Below are positions 11,851 to 17,800 of a stretch of 63,797 bases of DNA, one piece after another. The notes under the pieces are model-generated. The model searched no databases, had not been told where the DNA came from, and saw nothing but the letters and a program-made list of their open reading frames with translations. Every line of letters starts with the position of its first letter. Position 1 is the first letter of the stretch. The position numbers were made by a program, and so were the translations under genes. The DNA is from Gekko japonicus (taxonomy: Eukaryota), in assembly GCF_001447785.1 (NCBI RefSeq), contig NW_015165350.1, positions 21,672 to 85,468 on the forward strand. Reading direction: 5' to 3'.

Positions 11851-14800
11851 CTGTTCAAATAGAGAAAATCATGATAAATGAACTATTCAGACCAAAAAAT
11901 TAATGGGGATTTATGTACGTCAAATGTACATCCCCAGCATGCCTATACACACACATATACACAAAGATTTATACTAAATCAGACCACTACCAGGATCAGT
12001 ATACTCTACTTCGACTGGCAGCTGCTCTTTGGTTTCTCTGTTGGAGGTCTGTGGTGTTCGCTATGCAAATATGTTGGGAGTGTTTTATTTCTGTGTTTCA
12101 ATGGCTGTGGCCCATGATACCACTCACCCAAAGGGATACTTGAGACAGTCATTTTTTCCACAGGCATCTGGAGATCGGAAAGCCATGGCTCTTCTTTTGG
12201 TTCCAGTTTTATTATTACAGCAGGGAACCCTGTTTCGAGGAAGGGGGAGATGTAAGTTCAGCTTCATATCATCCCAGGCACCCAGTACCAAAGGAGAGCA
12301 AAAGGTACACCAAGGGTGGAACAAGTGGATGAGAGGAAAACCTTTTAAACCCTGAACCTAGAGCCTACTGTGAACCCCACATTAAATGAACTCGTCCCCA
12401 CCCTCACCTGATTGGTCATCAACAAGGTCTGCATTTTCCTCGGGTCCCTGGATCCAGGGCTCCTCTTCCTTTATGATAACATCAGGCAATCCTGAATCGA
12501 GAGAAAGTGAGGTAAGACGAGGCAGTCAGACGTGTGAGATTCAGACAGCTTGTGGTGTTAGCAGAACGCAACTGGTTGGCAAGATTTTTGTTCTACAGCT
12601 AATGGTTTGTTATTCTTTGGCTTACTGGACTCCTCACCTGTGCTGTAGTCTGACAGGATATTTCCTTCCTCCACACCCAGTTGATCTGGCATCTTTGGCT
12701 CTTCCACCTTTTCCACCTGTGAGATTGTGGTCAGGTTAGGAAGGCGAGATTCTGCCCAGGAAAGAAAGAAGTGTACTTCGTTAAGAAATAAAATTCTGTT
12801 ACAAAAACTAGCTACTTCTTTACTGAACCAAGCTCTACCCTCCTCTCTACTGGCAAAGATGAAGAGAGCTTCTGGAGTCCTGGCCCAGCTGGTGGACCAC
12901 TGAATCAAGCTCTACCCTCCTCTCTACTGCCAAAGACGAAGAGAGCTTCTGGAGTTCTGGCCCAGCTGGTGGACCTCCTGATGGCACCTGGGTTTGGGCC
13001 ACTGTGTGACACAGTGCTGGACTGGACAGGCCATTGGTCTGAGCCAATATGGCTTCTCTTATGTTCTTAGGTAGGAACGTGAATCTGGATGTATATCCTA
13101 CTATACTGTACTTTATATTAAAGGCCCGTGGTCGCTTGAACCCAAATCCTCACTCTGCCATGAAACACACTGGATAATGTTCTCTCAACGTGACCTACCT
13201 CATAGGGTTATTATCAGGATAAAATGTACACTGCCCTGAGCTCCTTGGAGGAAGGACAGGACAAAAATGTAAGAGATCAATCCCTCACCTAAGTGGTAAT
13301 CCAATGCGATATCCATTTCTTCTGAACCCAGCTGATGCAGAATTCCCACTGTTTCCCCTTTTTCCAGCTGAGACATCGCATCTAGATGAGGAATGGAAGA
13401 TTTTGCTACGGAACCACAGAAACTCAATTTGAAGGGATTTTTAATTTGGTGTATTTGAATTTGGTTCCAGTGTGATGCCGTGGTTAAGAGTGCCACACTA
13501 GGATCCGCAGGTTTGAATCCCCACTCTGCCATGGAAGCTTGCTGGGTGACCTGAGGCTGGTCTCAGAGGATAAAATGGAGAAGGGGAGAATGTGGTAAGC
13601 CACTCTAAGTCCCCAATGGGAAAAAAGTGGGCTGTAAATGACCACTTTGGGCTCAGGAAGCAATTTTTCTCCAGGCCATTTTGGCTGGAGATCCTGGAGG
13701 TTTTTTTGTCATCTTCCAGGTGTGAAACAGCAGTCACTGGGGATGTGGGGGGGGAGGTATTTGTGAATTTCCTTCATTGTGCAGGGAGTTGGACTAGATG
13801 ACCCTGGAGGTCCCTTCCATGATTCTACGATTCTAAATACACAAATAAATAACAAATCTGGTTATTTGCTTGTCAAGCATAATGCACCTTGGGCCATCTC
13901 AAAACAAAAGAGAACGTACAGGCAGAATTCCTGCAAAACTATGAACCTGACAAGAGCTTTAAAACATAGAAAGGAGCTCTGCTGTGTATTGGGGGAGGTG
14001 GGAAGGGGGCTTTATCGGCATTTTTCACACACGGTGCAATATAAACCTTTCATCACCAAAACAAAAAAGCTGTTTGTAAAATCCTCACAGAATGGTACGA
14101 CCATGAAGGGGAGAAGCGGTGATGCTCATCATGAAGCAACACCACAGGTGGGAGCCAATAGGAACTGTGTCACCTGTTAAATCATTGAACTCTGTCCAAT
14201 GGGGTGCCAACATGGCGGTTAGAGTGTGGACCAGGATCTAGGAGACCCAGGTTCAAATCCCTTCACTTCCAGGGACCATCATTCCCTCTCTCAACCTGAC
14301 CTACTTCATGCCATTATGGTGAGGATAAGACAGCAGAGCGCAGAAGAAAGTATGCCGCCCTGCACTCCTTCAAGGAAGAGTGAAATAAAAAGGTACTAAA
14401 TACGTAACTCTCCATAGCAACTGAGGTACAACCTGCATGAAGAATTGCACAGGCGTCAGCAACAAAATAATGCAATACTGTGCTTGGAAAATACCATATC
14501 CTGCACTCTCTTTGGAGAAAACATCTGGATCTCGCCCAGCAGAGGTGTAAATGTGCACGGATTGGGGGGGAAGCCTGCAAAAAGCCCTTTGCTGCTTTAT
14601 CTTTTAAATTTATACCCTGCCTATCTTCCAAAACAGCACAAGTATGGGTCTTTGGCCTGTGTCCCATCAAGCCACCCCCCCTCTTAGCATCAACTATGCA
14701 TCACCTGACACTACCTTCTGGACTCCAGCACCATTCCTCACCTGAACTGCTTTCTGAGACGATCTCATTGGGCTCAGATTCCTGGTGACGCAAGGCCCGT

Positions 14801-17800
14801 GGCTCCTCTTCCATTTCCAGTTTTATCACTGCATCGGGAAACTCTGTTCATGAGAAGAGTGTCAGAGGAAATGAGTCAGTGGCAGATCCCTATAAAGTAG
14901 GGCTTTGCCCACAAACCCACAAAGTACAGCACAATCTGAAAGGTCTCCAAGCGGGTTAGCTTCCTGACCCCTCCTCACCTGCGCTAAACTCCGATACAAC
15001 TTCCCTTTGCTCCAAAGCTGGCTGACCTGGAATCCACAGGTCTTCCTCTTGTTCCAGCTGGGAGATCAAGTCTGGCTTGACTGACAGAAATCCTGCCCAA
15101 GAACCAAGGAACAAAATTCAACAGGCAGAATTTCAGGGTTGAACTATGCTCTACACTACAGGATCACTAAATACGGCCAGCTGGTACCTACATTGGGGGG
15201 TGGGGAGGAACAGGTCTAGCTTCTGTTTGTGAATTATTCTTCACTGAAGTCAGTGGTTTTCTCCTACTTCCTAATTACAGGGAATCTTCTCCTTGTCTTG
15301 TCTGCAAAGAAACTCCTGCATGGAGCCGCCGCACACAGCAAAGGATTCTTGGACAGAAGAGCCTTTTATTTACCCTGAGGGAGCTGACTAGCGCCACCGC
15401 CACTGCAGCGTTACTCCTTGAGTGCCTCTGAATGTGGAGGTTCCCCTCAGTCACCACTGAAAGACTTATCCTTCATGGATCTATCGAATCCCCTTTTAAA
15501 GCTGTTTATTCCTGTGGCCAGCACTACATCCTCTGGCACTGAATCCCACATTTTAATCACTCTGTGTAAAGTCGTATTTCCTTTTTCGGAAGGTCTGTAG
15601 CACTGAGCAAGCAGCCTGTGAAGTGCCAATGAGGGCCAACCCTGCTTAGTTCCCAAGATCTGACTAGATAAGGGCTATCCTGATTAGGGCATTTACCTAT
15701 CTAAAGGCGATGAGATCCCTCTCAGGGAAACTGAGGTGTTTCCTAAAGAGGTAGTTGACTGAAACACAAGGAAAAGAGATTCCCTACCCAAGGAGGACAT
15801 GTTTTCAAAGTTTTCCTGCATGACGTCCCGGTAAAGAGCCTTCTGAAGAGGATCCAACAGAGTCCACTGGCTCTCCGTGAAATACACAGCTACATCTTCA
15901 AAAGACACATGGCCCTGAAGGAGGAGGGATAAGAAGTACTGTATATGTAAGGAGACAGTGCTTTATGTCCTTCCAAGGAGGAGGAGGAAGAGGAGGAGGA
16001 GGAAGAGGAGGAGGANNNNNNNNNNNNNNNNNNNNNNNNNNNNNNNNNNNNNNNNNNNNNNNNNNNNNNNNNNNNNNNNNNNNNNNNNNNNNNNNNNNNN
16101 NNNNNNNNNNNNNNNNNNNNNNNNNNNNNNNNNNNNNNNNNNNNNNNNNNNNNNNNNNNNNNNNNNNNNNNNNNNNNNNNNNNNNNNNNNNNNNNNNNNN
16201 NNNNNNNNNNNNNNNNNNNNNNNNNNNNNNNNNNNNNNNNNNNNNNNNNNNNNNNNNNNNNNNNNNNNNNNNNNNNNNNNNNNNNNNNNNNNNNNNNNNN
16301 NNNNNNNNNNNNNNNNNNNNNNNNNNNNNNNNNNNNNNNNNNNNNNNNNNNNNNNNNNNNNNNNNNNNNNNNNNNNNNNNNNNNNNNNNNNNNNNNNNNN
16401 NNNNNNNNNNNNNNNNNNNNNNNNNNNNNNNNNNNNNNNNNNNNNNNNNNNNNNNNNNNNNNNNNNNNNNNNNNNNNNNNNNNNNNNNNNNNNNNNNNNN
16501 NNNNNNNNNNNNNNNNNNNNNNNNNNNNNNNNNNNNNNNNNNNNNNNNNNNNNNNNNNNNNNNNNNNNNGAGCAGGTGTCAGGATCTGTTTTTACACAAA
16601 AAGAAGTTGGGGGGCTAAATCTTCCCCCTCTGCAATTTTGCTCTGCTCATTGTGCAGCCTGGGATTGACATACCTTAGGGACTCCCTCTCCCCTTACACG
16701 CCCCGAGCCTTGCGCTCTGCAGAGCAAGTTCTGTTGGTTGTCCCTGGCCCAAGGGACGTCGATTTAGCCTTGACCAGGACCAGTCCCCTTTTCTGCCCTG
16801 GCCTCAGCCTGGTAGAACATGCTCCCGCATGAGATCAGGGCCCTGCGGGACCTTTTATCGTTCTGCAGGGCCTGTAAAATGGAGCTGTTGTGCCAGCCCT
16901 TTGGTTGAGGTGGTGAGTGTCCAGGGGGAAAAAAGATGACCCTCCCACTGAAGACACCATCTGTGTGCAGCCCAGATTAAATGAATCCTAGAGCCCAGTG
17001 GCATCAGTATTGACTCAGTTTTTAAATGCTTGTTTTAATGTTTTAATTATTTATTCTTGTGTTGTGTGACCAAACGGTCCAATTGTTGTTTGTGATCTGC
17101 CCTGAGCCCATTTGCAGAGATGGCGGAATATAAATTTGAAAAATAAAATAATAAATAAATAAATTATACATTTCCCAGCCCCAGGTTGGGAAATACCTAG
17201 ACATTAGAGGAGGGATAAGAAGTACTGTATATGTAGGGAGACAGTGCTTTATGTCCTTCCAAGTTTAAAGGAGACACCATGGGGAACCATACCTATTCCA
17301 TTCACATACAGAGCAGGGGTCAGGATCTGTTTTTACACAAAAAGAAGTTGGGGGCTAACTCTTCCCCCTCTGCCATTTTGTTCTGCTCATTGTGCACCCT
17401 GGGACTGACATACCTTAGGGACCGCCTCTCCCCATACACGCCTTGCGCTCTGCAGAGCAAGTTCTGTTGGTTGTCCCTGTTTTTTATTTCCCCCTACACG
17501 CTTCATATGGGAATGGGGCTGACAAATAAAGACATACATGTGGTTAGCCCATCACATCTATTTTGACCCCTGGTAATCCCTAACAAAAAATAATAATAAT
17601 CCTGTATGGTTGGCCCGAGGCAGGGATGCCAACCTCCTCACCCATGTATTTCTGTCTAAATAAAAAACAAATTTCCCCCTACACGCTTCATATGGGAATG
17701 GGCCTGACAAATAACATCTATTTTCACCCCTGGTAATCCTTACAAAATAATAATAATAATCCTGTATGGTAGGCCCATGGCAGGGATGCCAATCTCCAGG

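Follow-up and report, generated by a model that had tools for sequence, protein, structure and literature searches.

Six KRAB-B-derived exons in tandem in a gecko zinc-finger gene: a cassette array of a squamate subfamily with putative SUMO sites

The KRAB-B box accompanies KRAB-A in hundreds of zinc-finger genes and helps repression. In mammalian KRAB-AB genes such as ZNF10, ZNF93 and ZNF568, a KRAB-A exon of 127 nt is followed by a phase 1-1 exon and then by a single exon that encodes the fingers. Binding of TRIM28 (KAP1) by KRAB-A requires Asp8, Val9, Glu17, Glu35 and Asn36 (numbering of ZNF93), and any substitution of Glu17 in human KRAB abolishes silencing; in the KRAB-KAP1 crystal, the KRAB-B part is disordered, and mutating it changes little (PMC9753469). 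Swapping KRAB-B alters the strength of repression (PMC3912051), and several auxiliary variants, namely KRAB-b, KRAB-BL and KRAB-C, have been listed (PMC6923878, PMC3971581). Here we analyze a stretch of 63,797 nucleotides from Gekko japonicus (contig NW_015165350.1; hereinafter, the window) that carries on its minus strand a KRAB zinc-finger gene, gene B, in which six exons apparently derived from KRAB-B are located between KRAB-A and the fingers, along with a related gene A and a third KRAB gene, gene C.

The boundaries of gene B were determined by reading the minus strand of positions 9000-16000 in three frames and recomputing the exact limits (Table 1). Gene B is an intact KRAB zinc-finger gene of a gecko genome, with a KRAB-A box that aligns with Pfam PF01352 over positions 2-41 of 42 and with the KRAB domains of PDB 1v65, 7w5q (ZNF568) and 7z36 (ZNF93), and with tandem C2H2 fingers in one 3' exon (19 matches to C-x2-C-x12-H-x3-H in a single open frame, 11848-9917). 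Its layout is that of the mammalian KRAB-AB genes, and in both the phase 1-1 exon next to KRAB-A opens with the pattern K-P-D-x-I-S-x-L-E-x-x-E-E-P-W; unlike those genes, gene B has six KRAB-B-derived exons instead of one, three of them of a derived subtype. Each of these six exons (E1-E6, hereinafter cassettes) is stop-free, is preceded by a pyrimidine-rich tract and an AG acceptor, ends at a GTGAG donor, and has phase 1-1 and a length that is a multiple of 3. A KRAB-B exon is expected as a separate phase 1-1 exon right after KRAB-A, which is the position of E1, and in one copy per gene, whereas gene B has six and gene A no fewer than two. The order of the cassettes is I-II-I-I-II-II, where type I is the classical, KRAB-B-like form and type II the derived one. 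We define a squamate tandem-cassette subfamily of zinc-finger genes by at least two tandem type II cassettes ahead of the finger exon, and gene B, with E2, E5 and E6, belongs to it. The KRAB-b, KRAB-BL and KRAB-C boxes resemble these cassettes in being small alternative exons after KRAB-A that modulate or accompany it; judging from their descriptions, they are set apart as a single box per gene, in contrast to the tandem copies of two B-derived types in gene B.

The original prediction for this locus listed five stop-free, phase 1-1 exons with AG/GTGAG sites and lengths that are multiples of 3. Recomputation returned their coordinates and lengths exactly and all five stand, but the array comprises six because E6 (12229-12128, 102 nt) had been overlooked. 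The proposal that the exons could be included or skipped without a frameshift follows directly from their phase. E3 is open over the 117 bp originally given; however, an inner in-phase acceptor at 13381 has a better pyrimidine tract than the one at 13405 and is the point where the match of the Sphaerodactylus townsendi gene model P0001 begins, so that E3 probably uses the inner acceptor and is 93 nt long, not 117 nt. A 554-N assembly gap (16016-16569) lies 100 bp upstream of the KRAB-A exon; the 5' exon or exons of gene B with the start codon, not located in the window, may sit in or past this gap.

Table 1. Features of genes A, B and C in the window
Gene	Feature	Coordinates	Strand	Length	Remarks
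B	KRAB-A exon	15788..15914	-	127 nt	phase 0 start, phase 1 end; Pfam KRAB PF01352, E=8.4e-22
B	cassette E1	14979..15092	-	114 nt	type I (classical KRAB-B-like), phase 1-1
B	cassette E2	14742..14843	-	102 nt	type II (hydrophobic-K-x-E plus acidic run), phase 1-1
B	cassette E3	13289..13405	-	117 nt (acceptor 13405) or 93 nt (acceptor 13381)	degenerate type I, phase 1-1 with either acceptor
B	cassette E4	12638..12751	-	114 nt	type I, phase 1-1
B	cassette E5	12408..12491	-	84 nt	type II, phase 1-1
B	cassette E6	12128..12229	-	102 nt	type II, 'last cassette', phase 1-1; a short way beyond the range of the original prediction
B	finger exon	9914..11850	-		linker of ~120 amino acids and 19 C2H2 fingers; stop 9916-9914
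A	KRAB-A exon	4260..4386	-	127 nt	
A	cassette A1	1804..1911	-	108 nt	type I, phase 1-1; paralogue of E1
A	cassette A2	1603..1683	-	81 nt	type II, phase 1-1; paralogue of E2 and E6
C	KRAB-A exon	30967..31093	+	127 nt	Glu retained at the Glu17 position

Local DNA alignment splits the eight cassette exons of genes A and B into two classes: type I, with E1, E3, E4 and A1, and type II, with E2, E5, E6 and A2. Global identity of exons versus introns is uninformative at these lengths, with shuffled sequences reaching ~0.59, and was replaced by z-scores of local alignments. The z-scores of exon pairs, which reach 23 in one of the comparisons, are about 9-16 within type I and 5.5-16 within type II, and even the degenerate E3 remains similar to E1 (z 13-16) and E4 (z 8-12). 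The 100-bp intron flanks score from -1 to 5.5, mostly below 3, and when the three I-II pairs are aligned with each other, conservation is confined to the exons and the vicinity of the splice sites. Synonymous divergence (dS) among the paralogous exons is 0.5-2.1, that is, near saturation, with nonsynonymous divergence (dN) of 0.3-0.6 and dN/dS of 0.18-0.67. Given that the introns are mostly unalignable and dS is near saturation, the duplications must be old, with the exons kept recognisable, open and in phase. Both the two sequence classes and the pairwise z-scores bear out the origin by exon duplication that had been proposed for the array, and the suggestion that the strongly diverged exons are under selection likewise agrees with the dN/dS values and with the 64-81 % amino acid identity to Sphaerodactylus discussed below. 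These comparisons support repeated exon duplication as the route by which all six cassettes descended from a KRAB-B exon. What was duplicated was, in its ancestral form, probably the pair of a type I cassette and, ~120-150 bp downstream, a derived type II cassette. Such a pair occurs twice in gene B (E1-E2, with an intron of 135 bp, and E4-E5, with one of 146 bp), which has in addition one unpaired cassette of each type (E3, type I, and E6, type II); the neighbouring gene A also retains a I-II pair.

A profile of the cassette peptides, compared with the window translated in all six frames and cut from stop to stop into 2,638 fragments, matches only E1-E6, A1 and A2, with the next match at E=0.11. 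Because this profile is self-trained, two independent profiles were built from other species. The first, a type II profile made of 17 cassette segments from seven non-gecko squamates (Varanus, Tiliqua, Lerista, Sceloporus, Pogona, Phrynocephalus and Anolis), recovers A2 (E=1.3e-11), E6 (6.3e-11), E2 (3.8e-10) and E5 (1.7e-4). The second, a KRAB-B profile made of 36 segments located after KRAB-A in proteins of turtles, crocodilians, birds and mammals, recovers E1 (5.8e-9), A2 (3.1e-8), E6 (1.6e-6), A1 (2e-6) and E4 (8.7e-4), is marginal for E2 (0.028), gives 0.29 for E3 and does not match E5. Thus, the notion that every one of the five exons is a KRAB-B variant holds as such for E1 and E4, both of type I; E2 and E5 belong to the derived type II, and for E3 and E5 the comparison with KRAB-B alone gives no significant match. 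In addition, E1 aligns with the KRAB-B region of ZNF568 (7w5q residues 92-110). A Pfam search with each exon found no family that covers the cassettes, the Pfam KRAB model ending at the A box, and a search of the ESM Atlas returned weak KRAB leads only (0.82-0.86).

A search of 1.84 billion representative proteins with the eight-exon profile (cut-off E<=0.001) yielded 142 matches, many with several matched stretches. Gene models with 2-6 tandem cassettes come from 10 squamate genera that span geckos, skinks, Varanus and iguanians, and all uninterrupted arrays of at least three cassettes are squamate. Among the geckos, these include Sphaerodactylus townsendi (P0001 with five cassettes, and P0097), Gekko kuhli (P0002 with four cassettes, and several other models on the same contig) and Heteronotia binoei (XP_060094008.1, at least three). 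The skinks are represented by Lerista edwardsae (P0017, and P0069 with about six cassettes) and Tiliqua scincoides (XP_066468624.1, P0009), in which KRAB and three cassettes precede a piggyBac transposase domain. The model from Varanus komodoensis (XP_044275329.1) has the order KRAB-A, I, II, II; at least three cassettes are present in Sceloporus undulatus (XP_042306439.1) and Pogona vitticeps (XP_078244534.1), and two in Phrynocephalus forsythii (P0132, type II) and in a CENPB-type protein of Anolis (P0122, R4GBS2). The location of cassettes ahead of transposase-derived domains, a piggyBac DDE domain in Tiliqua (PF13843, 3e-70) and a CENPB-type helix-turn-helix domain in Anolis, suggests exon shuffling of the module. 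By these gene models, gene B is a member of a zinc-finger subfamily found across squamates, with 2-6 cassettes before the finger exon or, in some lineages, before a transposase-derived domain.

Outside squamates, a group of turtle- and mammal-like matches resembles tandem genes that have been fused, as their cassettes take turns with KRAB-A boxes or finger arrays. Other models, from Pelodiscus (XP_075765397.1), Caretta, Platysternon, koala/possum (XP_078008545.1) and quail, share with gene B two KRAB-B-like segments in tandem after one KRAB-A; unlike gene B, they have only two copies, both classical, with neither type II cassettes nor arrays of 3-6. The tandem classical KRAB-B models of turtles, marsupials and quail carry the identifiers P0007, P0020, P0021, P0093 and P0126, and they indicate that duplication of the KRAB-B exon reaches beyond squamates. 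Homologues were also searched for with other queries: the pre-finger linker retrieved nothing, P0001 retrieved two relatives only, and the whole finger exon retrieved generic zinc-finger proteins from all vertebrates. We found no paper that describes either several KRAB-B-derived exons in one gene or the squamate architecture seen here. The suggestion that the array is an undescribed squamate architecture is accordingly upheld within the literature searched, but the architecture is not peculiar to gene B, being already present in public gene models of a subfamily across squamates; similar arrays were retrieved, as gene models only, from other geckos and further squamates. The proteins themselves are already in public annotation.

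The region between KRAB-A and the fingers of gene B would thus be encoded by six symmetrical phase 1-1 mini-exons, and the 205 residues of the six cassettes, all of which are net acidic, include 45 Asp or Glu versus 14 Lys or Arg. In every type II cassette (E2, E5, E6, A2 and those of other squamates), a hydrophobic-K-x-E core precedes a run of acidic residues, and the x position and the tails vary. Acidic residues after K-x-E are known as an extension that makes the SUMO acceptor motif dependent on negatively charged residues, and all squamate type II cassettes fit this extended motif as a pattern match within KRAB-B-derived sequence. The core itself, hydrophobic-K-x-E, is the consensus for SUMO attachment (PMC6923878). 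Sites that fit the extended motif are more numerous than in shuffled sequences, on average, in each of the 14 squamate arrays tested, and 11 of these reach p<=0.004. A literature search turned up nothing specific on SUMO sites within KRAB-B. In the AlphaFold2 model of Varanus P0011, the predicted local distance difference test score (pLDDT) is 70-86 for the three KRAB-A helices, the type I cassette forms a short helix, and the type II cassettes have no structure (pLDDT <50). Taken together, these observations lead us to propose, with a probability of about 0.7, that the six KRAB-B-derived exons of gene B, shared by a squamate subfamily, encode an acidic and intrinsically disordered segment that extends the KRAB effector and in which each type II unit would present a putative Ubc9-dependent SUMO acceptor site.

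Several observations weigh against this proposal. KRAB-B has been reported to affect KAP1 recruitment little (PMC9753469). The K-x-E core belongs to the profile used for retrieval, so that its enrichment is not independent; the dN/dS values come from 20-37 codons only, with dS saturated; and E3 and E5, taken singly, do not reach significance against the KRAB-B profile and, as far as descent from KRAB-B is concerned, are tied to the other cassettes only through DNA similarity to their paralogues. The gene models that support the array are predictions, not transcripts, some of them ab initio and fragmentary, and the closest of them, P0001, lacks a counterpart of E4 and ends in an intron read-through. 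Nor is the trait general: in a comparison sample of 27 other squamate zinc-finger proteins retrieved through the finger exon, mostly of the SCAN or SCAN-KRAB type, the pre-finger region holds 0-1 cassette, which makes the tandem arrays a subfamily trait.

The main alternative to a SUMO-acceptor extension is that the cassettes are real and included but serve as a tolerated acidic, disordered spacer without an effector role, with the copy number drifting neutrally and K-x-E simply inherited from KRAB-B. The disorder of KRAB-B in the KRAB-KAP1 crystal and the near-neutral effect of its mutagenesis (PMC9753469) are what such a spacer would predict, as are the predicted disorder of the type II cassettes, the range of 2 to 6 cassettes among species and paralogues, and the presence of the K in some mammalian KRAB-B boxes, for example, that of ZNF568. 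What makes us regard a spacer as the less likely reading is that, from geckos and skinks to varanids and iguanians, no type II cassette has lost hydrophobic-K-x-E or the acidic run although x and the tails vary freely, combined with the 64 % identity of the last cassette between gecko and skink, dN/dS below 1, and the transfer of the cassettes into transposase-derived genes as well.

The individual exons were also compared with gene models from other species. The closest relative of gene B, Sphaerodactylus P0001, has the same cassette order, with 29/37 identical amino acids in E1, 21/33 in E2, 25/31 in E3, 21/26 in E5 and 25/31 in E6 (64-81 % per exon); its missing E4 could reflect skipping, loss or an annotation gap. 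E4 is identical to Gekko kuhli P0002 at 27/37 positions and to the Logan open reading frame P0112 at 27/34, and E5 to P0002 at 22/25. E6 shares 21/33 residues (64 %) with the cassette that comes last in P0017 of the skink, which implies that the cassette directly before the finger exon is old within squamates. The residues encoded by split codons, predicted from the window for the joins E1/E2 through E6/finger exon, are Glu, Asp, Glu, Gly, Gly and Gly. Of these, P0001 agrees at four joins (E1/E2 Glu, E2/short E3 Asp, E3/E5 Gly and E5/E6 Gly), P0002 at the join into E4 (Glu) and at E4/E5 (Gly), and Phrynocephalus P0132, after two type II cassettes, at E6/finger exon (Gly followed by Asn-Gly); the latter protein is also 53 % identical to gene B over the linker and the first fingers (E=2e-54). 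Models from three species thus reproduce every splice junction after E1. In the Logan contigs P0112 and P0264 (1.3-1.4 kb), an unspliced open frame runs through the E4 orthologue and its intron flanks (window 12561-12791, minus strand), with 70 % identity over 77 residues.

It could be argued that the array is functional only in part, with E1 and perhaps E2 and E6 constitutive and the others, especially E3 and E4, relics or rarely used pseudo-exons kept open by chance and recent duplication. The ambiguous acceptor of E3 and its weak KRAB-B match (E=0.29), the absence of E4 from P0001, and the identity of E4 in Logan P0112, which is only modestly above that of the translated intron flanks, would all be compatible with this. 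However, the near-saturated dS and the mostly unalignable flanks show the duplicates to be old, and in spite of this age none of the six has lost its frame, its phase or its GTGAG donor; identity to the Sphaerodactylus homologue is ~81 % for E3, for E5 and for E6, and E4 with its junction is present in P0002, so that we consider partial decay of the array unlikely. As for the extreme possibility of a reading artefact, in which an ordinary KRAB-A/KRAB-B gene has a long intron filled with chance open frames and chance splice-like sites, some substance comes from ~25 candidates elsewhere in the window that by chance combine a pyrimidine tract, AG...GTGAG sites and an open frame, but this possibility is already contradicted, to the point of being extremely improbable, by the restriction of the cassette-profile matches in the window to these six exons and the two of gene A, by the independent recovery of the exons with profiles from other species, and by the same cassettes in the same order in annotated proteins of other species.

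Returning to the predicted cassette extension, the KRAB-A box to which it would be attached is itself a variant. Compared with ZNF93 (7z36_D), the KRAB-A boxes of genes A and B retain Asp8/Val9 and Glu35/Asn36 and have Gln at the position of Glu17 (minus strand, 4339-4341 and 15867-15869). They also read M-Q-E instead of the M-L-E of mammalian KRAB-AB genes, from which gene B differs at both places; M-Q-E is the consensus of lizard KRAB-A (PMC3971581). The Gln at the Glu17 position, within an x-G-Q-W pattern, is seen in Varanus P0011 and Podarcis P0015 as well. Given that the type II units fit the SUMO consensus, the array could add SUMO-dependent recruitment of co-repressors beside the Gln-bearing KRAB-A. 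Furthermore, because every exon is frame-neutral, the number of cassettes could change through duplication, loss or skipping and leave the protein intact. Extending this line of thought, one might speculate that the type II cassettes are a squamate-specific, copy-number-tunable SUMO-acceptor repression module within the disordered acidic array that would recruit SUMO-binding co-repressors and supplement or replace TRIM28 recruitment by a KRAB-A weakened at Glu17, its dose being set by exon skipping, duplication and shuffling, including shuffling onto piggyBac- and Tigger-derived genes; we view this full scenario as a long shot.

The two other KRAB genes of the window differ in their relation to the array. 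In gene A (1603-4386, minus strand), the A1-A2 intron is 120 bp long and A1 is identical to Gekko kuhli P0002 at 33/35 positions. Past A2 the gene runs over the left edge of the window; P0002 goes on with another I-II pair, which suggests that more gene A cassettes probably lie beyond the edge. Gene C (30967-35770, plus strand) has no cassette exons. A tandem repeat at 35119-35606 (period 149 bp, 3.3 copies, 95 % matches) interrupts its finger exon and, as 149 is not divisible by three, shifts the frame; gene C is probably a pseudogene or a truncated gene. Further assembly gaps are located at 28548-28558, 58995-59092 and 62625-62819.

The array matters for the understanding of KRAB-B, which has been a puzzle for 30 years and is not visible in the KRAB-KAP1 structure. 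Because the cassette exons of 81-117 nt match no Pfam family and are easily missed, the array also bears on the annotation of squamate zinc-finger genes. If the K-x-E cores are SUMO sites, it would be the DNA-binding protein itself that links repression by reptile KRAB zinc-finger proteins with the SUMO pathway. Recurrence across squamates lifts the array above a single-gene curiosity: a squamate lineage that appears to have multiplied the KRAB-B exon up to six-fold, diversified it into two subtypes that are both conserved and transferred it to other kinds of genes would provide a natural dosage series for the role of KRAB-B-like sequence.

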